Source: Epithemia pelagica (Eukaryota; Protista; Bacillariophyta). Taken from it: a stretch of DNA of 64,000 nt. The stretch is from assembly GCA_946965045.2 (NCBI GenBank), contig OX337241.1, positions 248,001-312,000 of the forward strand, read 5' to 3'. Positions 2,026 through 28,276 of the stretch are shown here, piece after piece; the first letter of the stretch is position 1, and the number at the start of each line of letters is the position of its first letter. The notes under the pieces are model-generated. The model ran no database searches and had not been told where the DNA came from. It saw only the letters and a list, made by a program, of their open reading frames with translations. The position numbers and the translations under genes were made by a program.

Positions 2026-3911
2026 TAGTCGCGATGCCATGCATGCTAAACCTCAGGACAAGACCAGGCTATGAACCCTCTCAAGAGAAGAAGGCAAGAA
2101 GAAAGAATGAAGAAACACACGGTCTGTTTCTGGTCGTTGGGTTTGTCCATGCTTGATTTTTCGGGCCTCCGCTTTTTCACAAGTACATAGTCATCAACGC
2201 AATTCTTCCATGAACTCTATTAATATTGCCTGTATTGTTATCCATTGGTGTGTTTGTTGTCTGAGATGCAATGGCCCATGTCTCCTTCCTCTAGATTCTA
2301 GGTGCGGGTTTCCACTCCAAACTCCAAAGATCAAGTTGGTGACATAGCTGGACGAAAAACTACTCGCTCTCGGTCTCGGGTCATGAACGTGATCGGTCGT
2401 AGAAACATTGGATGAAAAAAGTTGGTTGGGACAGACTGATGGGGGATTGCTCGCAAACGCACGAGACCTGGAAGCCTTGCGAAGTGTTCTACTGGGTTGG
2501 CACTCGAGACCCTTCGAATCCTTGCGTTCTTACACACTCTAATGAAAATGAGAATTGTCGGAACTCATCACGTATTAGTATCCGTTCCTTTTGGCTGTTC
2601 GACTTTTGAGTGCCTCCACTGATTCGGGCCCGCCGCTGTTTTCTGGTTCTGATGTTTTCTCCATCTCGATTACAAAAGTACGTAAAAAATGCTGGAAGTT
2701 CCAGAAGGTCTCGTCATACTATCAGTACTTATCATAGTCGCACTTCTATACGATAATCATGTATCATATACCAGAGTAACCAGATATGATCGATGATATC
2801 CATGATAACAAGGTGATAGGTGGACATCAACAACGATAGGTGTCGACGAGAGAATTCGGTGTTGTTCTGTTCTCCATTGCTTTTTCTTTGTTTGTGTGTA
2901 ATCCATACTGCTATCTGCTATCGTCCCCTTGTCTCGTCTTTTTCCTAAACGGACGGCGGACCTTGGCTGTTTGGCACGAATCCCAACGGCTGAGCGTCCT
3001 TAACAGTATCGAACCAATCAAGGAACCGAAGAGAACTGGACAAAAACGAAAGAGAACAGCAAGACAAATCTCATAAAAGAACAGGACAAATTATCCAATT
3101 ACAGCAAAAGCTCCATCGCCCATCGCGTCAAATGTACGGATAAGGCACACCATCAGCGATGAAAGTTGAGTGGGACCGTGGCAAAACAGTCAAGGTGTGC
3201 CCCCTCCTACGCCCATTACAGTTATTACACCCAAACCACTGACCCTTTCCGACTACTGATACAAAAATTCCTTACAAATGATGGACTTCGATGTCCTAAT
3301 CTGAGAGAGAAAAATGATGTCACCACCATAACCTTGCTTGCATCAGCCTTTTATCCCCCAAGTCGCTTCCCCCCAGTTCGGAATAGAACGAGCACGGATG
3401 CGATCCTTTCCGAAGAACAAGTTTGGAGAAAGCGTGGCCAGTACAATTGGTGCATGAACTTGATTGATTGCTTGCCTGCTTCAACCACAGGGAGCAACGG
3501 GTATCATTCTACAGGGATCTTCGATCAACCCGGTATCTTGCCGCTCACCAGCAGCGCTTCCCTCAAAAGTGAAACACTCCAAATCAATCCTCGATCGACA
3601 TGAAACCTTCCGGCAGTTGGCATGGGCACTTTTCTTTCGCTTCTTTCCCCAATGATGATCAATAGTGTTGAAGGATCTCAATCCAAAGCATCAGTCAACC
3701 AAATCCCAGTCTTCTCATCACACTACATCACCCGACGTCCAGTATATCGTTCGGAAGCTCCCAATCCTCTCAACATCGATCGATTCATTTTTCACATGCT
3801 CAGTCATCCCCCATCATGCGGTCGCGGTTTGATGTATCCCCCACGACTTCCGGTCGTGTGTATCCCAACCAACTTTTGCAACCATTCTTGTGGGGAATGT
3901 TTACTCCCGTA

Positions 3912-8428: not shown

Positions 8429-9764
8429 AGATCTCAACACATATACCTGTAGTCCTAAAATAGTTGCTAATTCAGCAATCCTCTTCTTCATACGTTGTTT
8501 CATTTCGTCACTGTCTTGGTCTTTCAGGGCTGCTGTCAATATGCTGAATTCGTTGAGTAAAGCTGCTTTTCCCATTCGCTCCTCACGTTTCATGGCGTTC
8601 CCAATAATGGCATTCTTCAAATCTCCAATTGCTGATGTCATATGAGAGTCAGTGGTACCATTTGTAGGAGTTGTCGTGCAGGAAATTGGTGAAGGAGCTC
8701 GTGAGGATGCACGAGAGCTCTTACCATCATTCTTGGCAGCAGGAATGCTGTCGATAGCAAAACAAGGAGCAAGAGCACTTGTAAAGGTCGTTTCAAAGTT
8801 CTGGACTGTGTTGCTTTTGGAATAAAAGTAAAAGGCAGTGAACTGTGAAATTTTACCCCCAGACCTTGCTCTCGCTATACCTGCTTTCGCGAAGTCCCAG
8901 GGATCGCTAGAATGACTCCCACTAGCATTCATTGCTGTCTCCATATGTTTCCTCACTTGTAGAAGAGTCTTCAGGATATTATTTGCTTCGTTGGGAGTGA
9001 GCTTGTTGGTGTTCTTGAGGGAGGGATCCAATCCTGCCAGCCCAGCATCCAACACGTGGTTGTTGTACGTCAAGTTTCTGTCATCCTTGTTGTCGTCTCG
9101 AATTTCCAACTTTCCATATTGGTCAGGGTTAATTCTTTTCTCTACTTGGGAATCCTCCTCTGAATACTCTTCTTCTGAATCATCTTCTGATTTTTTCTCA
9201 AGATCGGTGCATTCCTTAAGTTTTTGGGGAGAACAATCGGCACCGTTGACTGCATCGACTACTAGCTTCCAAAATCGCTGGTATTGCGACCCACTACCAG
9301 TTTCTTGAACGGCCCTGGACCTTACATCATTGAAAGCCATGAATTCATCTATAAAGTCACGATGAAACAACACATTGATGAGACGGCAGTGGGTGGATGG
9401 AATCTTCTCCAGCTGTCTTGTGATTATACCAATCTCATTTTTTGTCTTGATGGTATCGTAGCTCTGTCTTGTTGAGGCTGGCTTTCGTGATACCAAGCCT
9501 CCTCACAAGCTTCCTGAGTTGATGCACAGAGAGATCCTTGTCGACGTGCGTCTTGTCGTCGCCTTTTGCAATGATACAGGCAACTTCGACTTCTTCTTCT
9601 TGTCCTTCGTTTGTTTTTATCTTCTTCATCTCAGTTGTAATTGTATACTCATGTAAAGTTAGAGTATCCAGAGCCTCTAAAAATGGTGGAAGAGGTTTTT
9701 CAACACGCTTTGCTTTCTTCTTCTCAGGCCCAACATCCTGAGGTGCAGGAGGAGGGTCCGTCAT
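8312..9764 (-). pseudogene. Harbinger accessory (putative DNA-binding) ORF, frameshifted near 9450-9490
   Basis: ORFs 9435-9821 (ATG at 9764, MTDPPP) and 8312-9496 overlap in different frames inside the TIRs, convergent with the transposase, matching the two-ORF layout of PIF/Harbinger. Confidence 0.7.
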
Positions 9765-23403: not shown

Positions 23404-24731
23404 TTAGGCGACGACGGAAGGAGCAGTCATGGCCACGGGCAAGACTTCGCCACTGGCCAAATCCAAGGGAAAGTTGTGAGCGTTACGTTCGTGCATGACT
23501 TCCATACCCAAATCGGCGCGGTTGATAATGTCGGCCCAGGTGTTGATGACACGGCCCTGAGAGTCAATCACGGCTTGGTTAAAGTTGAATCCGTTCAAGT
23601 TAAAGGCCATGGTCGAGACACCCATGGCAGTCAACCAGATACCAATCACGGGCCAGGCGGCCAAGAAAAAGTGCAAGGCACGCGAGTTGTTGAAAGACGC
23701 GTATTGGAAGATGAGACGACCAAAGTATCCGTGGGCGGCGACAATGTTGTAGGTTTCTTCTTCTTGACCAAACTTGTAACCGTAGTTGGTGGATTCACTT
23801 TCGGTGGTTTCACGAATCAAGGAGGAAGTCACCAAGGAACCATGCATGGCAGAAAAGAGGGATCCACCAAAGACACCAGCAACACCAGCCATGTGGAAGG
23901 GGTGCATCAAAATGTTGTGTTCGGCTTGAAACACCAACATAAAGTTAAAGGTTCCGGAGATACCAAGGGGCATACCATCGGAGAAGGATCCTTGTCCAAT
24001 GGGGTAGTTGAGGAAGACAGCAGTGGCTGCAGCAACAGGGGCCGAAAAGGCGGTAAAGATCCAAGGGCGCATACCCAAACGGTAGGAAAGTTCCCATTCA
24101 CGGCCCATGTAGGCGGCCACACCAGTCAAAAAGTGCAAGACAATCAATTGGTATTCACCACCATTGTACAACCATTCATCCACCGAAGCAGCTTCCCAGA
24201 TGGGGTACAAGTGCATACCGATGGCGTTGGAAGAGGGGACAACGGCACCCGAAATAATGTTGTTACCATACAACAAGGATCCAGCAACGGGTTCACGGAT
24301 TCCATCAATATCGACTGTGGTAAATCAACAATGTTAGTGGACTCATTTCTCTTGTGGTTATCATTTTTTAGTCAAGGAGCGCACATACCGGGAGGAGCAG
24401 CGATAAAGGCGGTGATGAAGCAAGTGGTGGCGGCGAGCAAGGTGGGGAACATGAGGGTTCCAAACCATCCAATGTAGAGGCGGTTTTCGGTACTGGTGAT
24501 CCAGTTGGAAAACTTTTCCCAGACAGTGGCAGTGTTGCGCTTGGCGACAGCGTTCGTGTCCAAAGAGGCAGCCTTCAATTGGAAATCGGTCTCGGCCTCC
24601 ACATTGGTAGGAACAAAGGCAACGGCCGAAGACGAGGAAGTACGGGCGTTGGTGTTCAAAGGAGCAGGTGCGGTGAAAGCATTGGCTTGAGAAGCCAAAA
24701 GAGTGGCAACAATGGCAGTGGCGAACTTCAT
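23404..24731 (-). CDS. psbA: Nucleus-encoded photosystem II reaction-centre protein D1 with bipartite plastid-targeting presequence; exons 24389-24731 and 23404-24314, 417 aa
   Basis: Spliced product is a 57-aa presequence plus a 360-aa D1. With offset 57, residues D61, E65, H118, Y161, D170, E189, H190, H198, H215, H252, S264, H272, H332, E333, H337, D342 and A344 are all in register. Presequence [22 protein letters not shown]. Intron GTATGT...CACTAAC...CACAG. Confidence 0.98.
24315..24388 (-). other. 74-nt phase-1 spliceosomal intron in psbA
   Basis: 5' GTATGT, branch point CACTAAC, 3' CACAG. Removal restores [14 protein letters not shown] (codon G|TC); the unspliced frame hits a stop. Confidence 0.96.
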
Positions 24732-25432: not shown

Positions 25433-28276
25433 TTACACACTGTCGAGTCCTTGGCGTTGACTCTCTCGGTGTCGTGCTTCTGCGTCGTCATCGTCATCTT
25501 CGTCAAAACTATCCTGAGAGTCCTCCAAATCATAATCCGGCCAACGAGTCGTCACGGACAGGAGCGAATCTTGTCGTTGCGGAGTCAAAGTTTCTGGTCG
25601 TCGTCGTTCTGGTGAACCACTACTAGGTTCCTGCAAATCGGAAAAGGTTTGATAAATGCGTTCTTGTTGAATCGCCCAAAAGGATGAAAAGGATGACAAT
25701 GGATACGCTAGCAAATGATCTTGTGAATCGTCCGATCGCGACGTGACCAACGTGGTCGCAGTCGACGACCGCACTGTTCCAGAAGAAGAGGGACGCACAT
25801 GTCGTTGTGGCCGTCGTGGTCGAGGTGACGATCGCGGTGGCGAAGACCGTGATCGCTGTAGTAAAGGAGAAGACGAGGAAGGTCGCTGTCGACGACCCAT
25901 GGTTCGTTGCTGAGATGATGATGAGGGACGGAACGGCCATTCTGGCACGTCTCCTTCATGTTGCGGTAAGGCGTCGCTCGAGGATGCGCGGAGCCGTTGG
26001 GCATACCAGGCTCGAGAAAGGCGTTGTGTCGTGCTGCTAGGAGTAGCATCCGTGGCGCTGTTGCTGTTAGAGTTGCTGTCATTGTTGGTTCGATGAGTTG
26101 TACGAATGTTGTGGCGTGAGGATGGAGCATGTGGAACTCGTGGAAGTGGCCGTATCGGTCTCTGCAGTTGCGAATTTTGTTGTTGTTGGGCCAGTATTTG
26201 TCCCACAATATGAGCAAAAGACCCAGAAGACGAGTCATCATCATCATTGCCCCCCTCCTCATCGTCATCGTGGTCTTCACTCATGGTGCTGTCATTGTCC
26301 AGAGGACTCGTCGTGGTGAAAGGATTGCGACGAGCCTGTGGTTTGAACATTTCTACCCGACGTCGACATACAGGACAGGTCAATTGATCTCGTTCACAAT
26401 GACATGCCCACTCCTCCCAACATGTCGTATCAAATACATGACCACAGGGAAGTAGCTTCAACGGAAGACCATCCGAGCCGACCATTCTCCCTACTTGATG
26501 ATGTTTATGCTTGGACAACAATGGCAGTGTTTCACCGCGGCCACTTCTATATTGAAAGCTTTCCAAACAAATGGGACAACAGGTTGCCTTGAATTTCCCT
26601 TGAAGGGCCCGTCCAGCATGAATCAAATCCCATTGGTTTTGTACCATGCGGAGCCACCGCTTGGTATCGTCACACCATGTGTGACATTCGCGGCAAGTGA
26701 TGGTACCAAGACTGGCCACAACACAGCACTGAAAACACCAGGCGACCGCTACCGCAATGGCGGCCAACCATCCCAAGGAAATCCACCACCAATTCTTTTT
26801 GTTTTTCGTAGTATTACTTGTAGGATTGGTCGATGCCTCGTCGCCGTCCTCCCGATTGTTGTCGTCTGTTTCTGAATCGGATAGTACTTCTTGCTCGTCG
26901 TCCTCACTATCCGCTTCATCCGTAGACACGGATCTTTGGCCCTTGGATTGGGTTCCATTGTTGCTCACGAGAAGATGCTCTTGACCATTTTCAATCTCAT
27001 GCACCTCCTCCAACCCAACTTCAGGAGCAGCGTTTGGTTCCTTGGAATGTACTCCAGCGTCCTGTGCTGTCAGATGATTTGGTGTCGACGACGACATTGT
27101 TGGTTGTCCATTCTGGGTTTTATCTTTCTCCAAACTCTGTCCCACCAAAATGGAATTTGGGTCGCTGGTTGTTGTTGCGGACGACGATTCCTTGGGTTGA
27201 GCTTCCAAAAACCACTGGACTGTTTCTTGAATGGCTCGGACCACCTCGCCCTGTTGCATCAACGTCGTCAACGAGTATTTGAGCGTGATCCACCCGCTAC
27301 TGTCGTCGTCGTCATTGGGGGATCTCGGAGGAAGAGGGTGGAGGGGATTCACCGAAATGGTACGCCGGACCGTTGGAGAATGAACATAGATAAAGGCTTG
27401 TTGGTCCGTTGGAGAAATGACCAATAGATCGAAGGACGAGGGTTTGACCTCGGTGGTAAAAAAGCGATAGAGTAGACCCGTAAACGTTCCAATGTCACAA
27501 CGGTCTCGGTCGCAATCCACTCCGAACCACTGTGTGATCCAAATGAGGCGACCACACAAGCATCATGAGGGTGACTGTCCATGAGCAACCACAGTGACAC
27601 AATCGGTACAACACAAACATATCTTACGTACCACGTAAGGTAAGGCGTTTTGTTTGTGCACAGACCGTTCGGGAGGCAAAATCACCACCACCACCATTGG
27701 GGCCGTAGTAGTATTCGTTGTAGAATCCGGCGCCAGATTGCGAATGGTTTGACGTTCCATGGCGGTCAATGTGGCACTGGGATCGCACAGGGTGACCAGC
27801 TCCTCGTGACGACTCGCGTTATTATTATTATTATTGTTGTTGTTGGTATCGTCCAGGAACCGACGACCGCATTCCTCAAACGGCGTCAACCATTGGCGTT
27901 CTCGTTCTTGATGGATTCGGTGCGCAACCGACAAGTGAGCCGATACGGTACCACTGGTATCATACGGACCGTCGTTCCAATGGTCGGACAAATGGTAGTG
28001 CGAATCATGGTACGACGAATGGTACGAGCCATGGTTGGACGAATGATCATACGAATCATGGTACGACAAATGATGGTAGGAAGAATGACTCCGGGATGCG
28101 ACACCGGCCTGTCGCTGGGAGACCAATGCCGTCGCAAACGTAAACAGAGAACTAGGAATCAGCACAACAATCACGGTCACGGCCACCAGGAGGTACCAGG
28201 GAAGACGACCGAAAAAAAAAGAAGAAGAAGAAGAACCACCACCACGACTCCATCCTGGTTGCCCGGTTGTCCTCAT
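25433..28276 (-). CDS. TPM/MOLO1-like domain, transmembrane helix and RING finger protein; intron 27530-27631
   Basis: Donor GTACGT at 27631 and acceptor CACAG at 27530 join two ORFs in frame. Hydrophobic N-terminus, ECGRR..LCDPSATLT and DLLVISPTDQQAFI (TPM-like), TM segment WWWISLGWLAAIAVAVAW, RING CPIC...CGHVFDTTC...CPVC. Confidence 0.75.

Follow-up and report, generated by a model that had tools for sequence, protein, structure and literature searches.

A nuclear psbA gene with a shared intron and nuclear codon usage in a diatom, and evidence for its old transfer from a diatom-type plastid

psbA, encoding D1 of photosystem II (PSII), is a standard organelle-retained gene, and its retention is explained either by the need to make a hydrophobic, fast-turnover product on site or by local redox control. 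To our knowledge, D1 is plastid-encoded in every photosynthetic eukaryote described. A psbA gene interrupted by an intron, found in the 64-kb stretch of DNA analysed here (the window), raises the question of whether such a sequence is a trivial insertion of plastid DNA (NUPT) or a functional gene of some age; intron and codon evidence is what sets the two apart. A first-pass annotation of the sequence had read the intron and the codons as signs of an old transfer under selection. From the evidence below we consider it very likely that the window gene is an old, selected nuclear psbA, derived from a diatom-type plastid and transferred before the sampled raphid pennates diverged.

Structure and nuclear setting of the window gene

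The gene consists of two exons on the reverse strand (Table 1). Exon 1 encodes a leader of ∼65 aa, which replaces the native D1 N-terminus, D1 residues about 12–57 and the first base of the Val58 codon. This codon (codon 115 of the gene) is cut after base 1 by the intron, between AAPP and VDIDG. If the intron were retained, whose length is not divisible by 3, translation would run through five codons (GMCAP) to a stop, and its removal exactly restores an invariant D1 motif of 15 residues. A dynamic-programming spliced aligner, benchmarked on annotated Epithemia, Nitzschia and Seminavis proteins with residue-for-residue agreement, independently recovered the two-exon model without stops or frameshifts. 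The GT-AG intron with its CACTAAC motif inside PPVDIDG thus lies where the first-pass annotation had placed it. In homology searches, which were run exon by exon, the Pfam Photo_RC profile (PF00124) matched exon 2 at 4e-75 (252.8 bits, profile positions 34–255 of 260), and profile positions 1–29 were supplied by exon 1.

Table 1. Features of the psbA locus in the window, with the evidence for each.
Feature	Position	Strand	Description and evidence
Exon 1	24389..24731	-	343 nt; ATG at 24731; translation, Photo_RC N-terminal match aa 85–113, spliced alignment
Predicted signal peptide	24678..24731	-	18 residues, from sequence pattern; then F (ANA/FTAP, ASAFAP-type junction)
Intron	24315..24388	-	74 nt, spliceosomal-type GT-AG, GTATGT...CACAG, phase 1 in Val58 codon
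CACTAAC branch-point-like motif	24333..24339	-	branch A 19 nt ahead of 3′ splice site
Exon 2	23404..24314	-	911 nt including TAA (23406..23404); D1 residues 58–344 and 16-aa C-terminal extension
RING-finger gene, upstream of psbA	25433..27559	-	Pfam RING matches

The leader resembles the bipartite plastid-targeting leaders of diatoms, in which, as predicted here, the signal peptide is followed by an aromatic residue at +1. The same pattern, M[KR] followed by a hydrophobic stretch and by AxA before F, was present in 40 of 41 leader-bearing database relatives. In the D1 part, all aligned positions of known importance that we inspected were kept, namely Tyr161, His190, Asp170, Glu189, His198, His215, His272, His332, Glu333, His337, Asp342 and Ala344, together with the QB-site residues His252, Phe255 and Ser264; no ligand is missing at Tyr-Z/His190, the Mn4Ca cluster, P680, the non-heme iron or the QB pocket. 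The 16 residues past Ala344 form a diatom-type extension of the kind that CtpA would remove. The best solved structure was chain A of PDB 6jlu, which we take to be the Chaetoceros gracilis PSII-FCPII structure, with 93% identity over 300 residues (640 bits). On these features it is well founded to suppose that the product would work as D1 in PSII.

The nuclear copies also have clade-specific substitutions relative to plastid D1 (C35T, Y48F, I50T, V160T/N and L277A). T35 and F48 occur in all 14 mapped nuclear loci, the motif GWFGT in 42 of 42 nuclear rows, and T or N at position 160, which adjoins Tyr-Z, in 36 of 42. Derived residues held in common by the nuclear copies fit a single origin.

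The surroundings of the gene are those of nuclear DNA. GC content over the window psbA (∼0.50) equals that of its flanks, the long ORFs around it encode EF-Tu-type GTPase, RING, SET, NAD-epimerase and HEAT-repeat domains (Pfam), and its orthologues sit on contigs of 0.7–3.5 Mb. When three diatom-type plastid contigs (L028–L030, with the gene order ycf46-like AAA, ccs1, psbA) were compared by blastn with the whole 64 kb, the psbA coding sequence was their sole match, at 77–78% identity from base 1 of exon 2 onwards, and no plastid flanking DNA was found in the 64-kb window. As to the identity of the neighbours, the NAD-epimerase ORF is the gene that had been annotated as GME, and the HEAT-repeat ORF is PP2A-like.

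The RING-finger gene upstream of psbA is conserved as its neighbour in Epithemia clementina. In tblastx comparisons, window positions 25640–26778 matched positions 772–1886 of the Epithemia contig L001, upstream of a psbA copy at 3105, and the RING-gene segment of the window matched L001 again at 8681–8806, ahead of a second psbA copy. Because a RING-gene match lies upstream of psbA in both the window and Epithemia, we conclude that the psbA locus is positionally orthologous in the two. Judging from the repeated match, the duplication unit in Epithemia takes in part of the neighbouring RING-finger gene.

Codon usage, divergence and selection

We calculated codon statistics over D1 residues 20–344, taking as the reference the 15 further ORFs in the window with a length of 350 aa or more. 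GC3 of the window psbA was 0.609, compared with 0.511 for the window ORFs (range 0.45–0.64), 0.26–0.36 for diatom plastid psbA and 0.168 for neighbouring plastid genes; the leader (0.60) did not differ from the rest of the gene. The codon adaptation index (CAI) against the window ORFs was 0.777 for the window psbA, 0.64–0.82 for the ORFs themselves and 0.56–0.58 for plastid psbA, so that on both measures the gene falls inside the range of the nuclear ORFs of the window and outside that of plastid psbA. Relative synonymous codon usage (RSCU) correlated positively with that of the nuclear set (+0.49) and negatively with that of the plastid set (−0.15).

Individual codons gave the same picture. 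Leucine is encoded by TTG in 71% and by TTA in 0% of cases, compared with 96% TTA in plastid psbA, and GCC (66%), CCC (77%), ACC (74%) and GTC (47%) are each at 0% in plastid psbA; AAC reaches 95%. Phenylalanine is encoded by TTC in 36% and TTT in 64%, the same share as in the window ORFs, compared with 60% TTC in plastid psbA. Of the codons that the first-pass annotation had listed as nuclear in style, GCC, GTC, TTG, AAC and CCC were borne out, and TTC, which is not preferred, has to be dropped. The effective number of codons (ENC) was 32 for the window psbA and 52 for the pooled window ORFs. So strong a preference for the codons favoured in the nucleus is typically seen in genes with high expression.

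Divergence from plastid psbA is concentrated at synonymous sites. Against the plastid genes of L028 and L030, nucleotide identity was 77–78% and protein identity 92–94%; by codon position, identity came to 0.93 for the first two and to 0.44–0.47 for the third. The high nucleotide identity to plastid psbA that would mark a recent insertion was thus not found. Owing to saturation of synonymous sites, NG86 dS against plastid psbA was undefined and YN00 returned nan for most pairs, and the dN/dS values that follow are to be read as bounds only. Relative to the nearest nuclear orthologue, that of Epithemia clementina, dN was 0.015, dS ∼1.0 and omega 0.015, and relative to 12 other nuclear loci omega was 0.02–0.065 at dS of 1.1–2.4. 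Since the plastid pair L028–L030 gave an omega of 0.068, nuclear psbA is at least as constrained as plastid psbA. These values, with saturation against plastid psbA and dS of about 1 or more among nuclear orthologues, agree with the long purifying selection that had been proposed from the conserved protein and its changed codons. Between the window and Epithemia, the leader evolved ∼18 times faster than the mature part (dN 0.28 and 0.015), a fast leader on a slow core being the pattern expected if a targeting peptide is fused to a constrained core.

The gene family in diatoms and the age of the Val58 intron

With exon 2 as the query, a word-index search of proteins returned dozens of D1 proteins of 403–460 aa that bear the same type of leader. 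Epithemia clementina has at least six psbA paralogues, on contigs of 0.18–1.2 Mb, and the nuclear psbA genes of Nitzschia inconspicua lie on contigs of 3.5 and 4.2 Mb. Other named carriers were Nitzschia sp. RCC80, Pseudo-nitzschia australis, Amphora coffeiformis, Entomoneis sp. CCMP467, Seminavis robusta and a Bacillariaceae MAG; we take all named carriers to be raphid pennates. Three of the database products agree with spliced gene models. P0021, an intron-free product from a 1.4-kb contig, equals the spliced model of locus L016 at 430 of 430 residues, P0064 equals that of L008 at 436 of 438, and P0044, the product of an MMETSP transcript of Amphora coffeiformis, runs unbroken over the five introns of L003 at 97% identity. 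From these matches we conclude that members of the nuclear psbA family are transcribed and spliced.

We mapped introns on genomic DNA of Epithemia, Nitzschia and Seminavis and on 25 metagenomic loci. The phase-1 intron in the Val58 codon was present at the identical base in the window, in both Epithemia copies on L001, in Seminavis robusta (L033) and in five metagenomic lineages (L007, L015, L009–L012, L021/L022 and the Amphora-like L003). In these carriers the junction reads CCN G/GT...AG/TY GAY ATY GAT GG, with slashes at the splice sites. For Seminavis robusta, the spliced aligner reproduced the annotated model CAB9521354.1 at 427 of 427 residues. Among the mapped loci, the Val58 intron was absent from Nitzschia inconspicua, L004, L006, L008, L013/L014/L023 and L016–L019, and in L005 an intron interrupts the Pro57 codon, exactly 3 nt upstream of the Val58 site. 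ACTAAC-like motifs were found in the Epithemia and L005 introns as well. The loci without the Val58 intron have others, at D1 positions 73, 89, 99, 124, 177/178, 195, 200, 246/248, 281, 298, 301/302 and 326, and Epithemia psbA is interrupted a second time at D1 246, where the window gene has no intron. As read from these positions, intron turnover went on after the Val58 intron arose.

When plastid psbA was used to root the DNA trees, the Val58 intron required at least four changes of state, and the intron was present in every major subclade. One early gain followed by about four losses would be more parsimonious than at least six gains at a single base. Outside the splice signals, the sequences of the Val58 introns were no more similar to each other than shuffled controls, which fits great age. 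Because the intron is common to Epithemia clementina, Seminavis and five metagenomic lineages, it predates the split of these raphid pennates and was inherited in the window lineage rather than gained there. The use of the intron as a sign of an old transfer is thereby strengthened, the search for orthologues sharing its position having found seven lineages besides the window.

Full-text literature searches found no published account of a natural nuclear psbA in diatoms. A paper on Nitzschia putrida lists psbA among 'nuclear-encoded plastid proteins', where it stands next to psbC and psaA, so that the list is no specific report of a nuclear psbA. The Epithemia genome preprint detected no NUPTs by DNA homology and used anti-PsbA as a loading control only (PMC11383321). 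psbA was found in every diatom plastome of one survey (PMC12412971); the nuclear genes thus come on top of the plastid gene without replacing it, and no need for a nuclear copy is obvious.

Donor, proposed history and alternative explanations

We placed the gene in a protein tree of 56 rows (IQ-TREE, LG+C20+F+G4). Nuclear psbA formed one clade (support 100/100) on a stem branch of 0.10, in which the window grouped with Epithemia (96/84). This clade was grouped with diatom-type plastid D1 at 92/91, within a red-lineage clade (100/95). Among the diatom-type plastid rows of that group were Proboscia, the sole named one, the two plastid contigs whose genes stand in diatom order, and clusters P0033 and P0040; few plastid D1 clusters can be named, since D1 collapses at 90% identity. 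Placed apart from the nuclear clade were Meringosphaera, whose plastid presumably derives from a dictyochophyte, a further red-lineage group, green D1 (100/96), and the D1 of cyanobacteria and cyanophages. Window D1 shares 93–94% identity with diatom D1, compared with 83–88%, and 88% at most, with cyanophage D1. Each of the residue motifs that the first-pass annotation had called diatom-type was present in 8–11 of the 11 diatom-type plastid D1 rows (RADLG in all 11), in none of the 3 green rows and in 0–3 of the 11 rows from cyanobacteria or phages. The extension ASG[DE]VLPVA was confined to diatom plastid D1, with 8 of the 11 rows, and to the nuclear copies.

These data place the nuclear clade beside diatom-type plastid D1 and not outside the diatoms, and a cyanophage or bacterial donor, which the first-pass annotation had argued against, falls in a separate part of the tree. 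Its naming of the host's own plastid lineage as the donor holds as far as a diatom-type plastid; a particular diatom lineage lies beyond the resolution of D1. The tree and motifs, with support below maximal, would thus resolve the donor to diatom-type plastid D1 only and to no particular diatom group.

A history consistent with these results is that psbA moved from a diatom-type plastid to the host nucleus ahead of the divergence of the sampled raphid pennates. After the transfer, the gene would have acquired a bipartite plastid-targeting leader and spliceosomal introns, of which the Val58 intron is probably the oldest. Its synonymous sites would have been completely recast to nuclear codon usage, and purifying selection on the D1 part appears since then to have matched that on plastid psbA in strength. 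In the cell, the mRNA would be spliced and then translated on ER-bound ribosomes, and the precursor would pass the four plastid membranes by means of its signal and transit peptides. Insertion into the thylakoid and trimming after Ala344 would then yield a working D1 in PSII beside the plastid-encoded D1. We know of no natural gene for which import of the five-helix D1 over four membranes has been demonstrated.

Several other explanations of the window gene were weighed against this history. Homology to psbA is what a recent, non-functional NUPT that keeps its open frame by chance would also show, and NUPTs are common in nuclear genomes. However, such an insertion should not have come to 77–78% identity with saturated synonymous sites and no plastid flanks, nor should it have nuclear codon usage and GC3, a spliceosomal intron, a targeting leader, omega of 0.015–0.065 and orthologues at a syntenic Epithemia locus. 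In addition, a search by DNA homology in the Epithemia genome paper had turned up no NUPTs (PMC11383321). We reject the NUPT reading as refuted by nucleotide divergence and codon usage and give it practically no credence. It is very improbable that the gene was acquired horizontally from cyanophages, cyanobacteria or algae other than diatoms, although cyanophages carry psbA and their D1 is 83–88% identical to that of the window, because phage and cyanobacterial D1 are separate in the tree and the nuclear clade lies with diatom-type D1 (92/91) in the red-lineage clade (100/95). The higher identity to diatom D1 (93–94%), the diatom-type extension and RADLG point the same way, and it is the tree placement with diatom-type plastid D1 on which we reject a cyanophage origin. 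A contaminant or an assembly artefact was likewise rejected as a reading of the window psbA.

The other two alternatives accept a nuclear gene and concern its role and the history of its intron. The gene could be conserved and expressed, with a product that is a stress-specific or regulatory isoform or that acts outside mature PSII; cyanobacteria keep specialised D1 isoforms, the nuclear stem branch is long (0.10), and the nuclear copies have fixed changes foreign to plastid D1, such as GWFGT (42 of 42) and T/N160 (36 of 42). We regard this as unlikely, given that the ligands of the Mn cluster, P680, non-heme iron and QB are all kept along with the CtpA-type extension, that identity to the solved diatom D1 is 93%, that omega is as low as for plastid psbA and that the codon bias is of the highly expressed type (ENC 32). 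Somewhat less likely again is that the Val58 intron was inserted repeatedly at a favoured site, in which case it would not be ancestral and would carry little information on age. Introns of the family do lie 3–4 nt apart between lineages (D1 177/178, 246/248, 298 and 301/302), the L005 intron is exactly 3 nt from the Val58 site, and similarity between the intron sequences does not exceed that of shuffled controls. Repeated insertion would, however, have had to strike the same base in the same phase in seven lineages and the window, across every major subclade, where one gain and about four losses are more parsimonious than at least six gains. The age of the gene is also supported independently of the intron, by saturated dS, taxonomic breadth and synteny. 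An old nuclear psbA with an ancestral Val58 intron and a D1 product thus remains our preferred reading.

The comparison with plastid-encoded diatom PsbA (6jlu chain A) brings out both sides of this reading. The two share 93% identity, the ligands, the C-terminal extension and the Photo_RC domain, whereas the window gene differs in being nuclear, intron-split and leader-bearing, with GC3 of 0.61 as opposed to 0.26–0.36 and with clade-specific substitutions. For NUPTs, the likeness is confined to plastid DNA as the ultimate source, and the window gene lacks their high DNA identity, plastid flanks, plastid base composition and decay. Functional endosymbiotic transfers are known in diatoms; Thalassiosira species have nuclear copies of psb28 and petF. 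With such genes the window psbA has in common its nuclear location, introns, nuclear codons, bipartite leader and F at +1, but its cargo is D1, a five-helix core subunit of the reaction centre, and the plastid copy has been kept.

We lean slightly towards the view that in raphid pennates nuclear genes routinely supply a share of the D1, which is imported over four membranes. If this is true, the rule of an organelle-bound D1 gene would have had a natural exception since ancient times, and the CoRR and hydrophobicity explanations would become directly testable in Seminavis and Nitzschia, which can be cultured. An old, conserved nuclear psbA argues that neither hydrophobicity nor redox control absolutely bars transfer to the nucleus, and it offers natural material for studying the import of a reaction-centre core protein. 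It is also relevant to crop engineering, where nuclear D1 is made artificially: in Arabidopsis, tobacco and rice, targeted D1 from an engineered nuclear psbA was reported to supplement PSII (reviewed in PMC11355022), from which it follows that imported D1 can work in principle. Those plant genes are artificial, use a single transit peptide into a two-membrane plastid and have no evolutionary history, whereas the diatom genes are natural, old and in some species multi-copy, and their product has four membranes to cross.

A polar residue beside Tyr-Z

The residue of D1 that directly precedes the redox-active Tyr161 (Tyr-Z) is Asn in the nuclear psbA of the window. Position 160 is likewise Thr or Asn in most of the nuclear copies (36 of 42), whereas the 11 diatom plastid D1 sequences all have Val there; a polar residue next to Tyr-Z marks the nuclear psbA clade.

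Features of the nuclear psbA neighbourhood and of related loci
Feature	Location	Strand	Remark
RING-finger ORF	window 25433-27559	-	partly conserved upstream of Epithemia psbA
D1 residue 160 codon	window 23998-24000		AAC (Asn)
Nuclear psbA copy 1	L001:3105-4530		Epithemia clementina
Nuclear psbA copy 2	L001:10001-11432		Epithemia clementina
D1-like gene	L025:242-1267
D1-like gene	L026:625-1539
psbA	L024:2003-3091		Tara contig; intronless, without leader
Intron	L005:1563-1635		phase 1, Pro57 codon

Synteny and paralogues in Epithemia

Two psbA copies lie in tandem at the Epithemia clementina locus, spaced ∼7 kb apart (dS 0.047, dN 0.001 between them), and upstream of both is sequence resembling the RING-finger gene of the window. 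Because part of this ORF, whose long, low-complexity tails are rich in Ser, Asp and Pro, is conserved upstream of Epithemia psbA, it serves as a syntenic anchor between the two taxa. At least six distinct nuclear paralogues, spread over three contigs of E. clementina, suggest recent tandem amplification or gene conversion.

Intron positions across the family

Relative to the usual Val58 position, the intron of locus L005 is displaced upstream by exactly 3 nt, an offset that could reflect either intron sliding or a separate insertion beside the common site. A second common position, after D1 residue 195 (phase 0, HNILMH|PFHMAG), is occupied in the Nitzschia inconspicua and Amphora-like loci (L002 and L003) and in L006, and several loci carry near-coincident sites (177/178, 246/248, 298 and 301/302) that are 3–4 nt apart between lineages. 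The position after residue 195 and these near-coincident sites hint at an early gene rich in introns or at insertion hot spots.

Divergent and phage-like relatives

The Tara psbA (GC3 0.45) probably comes from a cyanophage or a picocyanobacterium, since its D1 clusters with that of Prochlorococcus phage P-SSM4 (support 98/93), and it was likely retrieved solely through the conserved D1 portion of the query. The D1-like genes of L025 and L026 are AT-rich (GC3 0.21–0.23) and highly divergent, and share a long branch (length 1.0; SH-aLRT 100).
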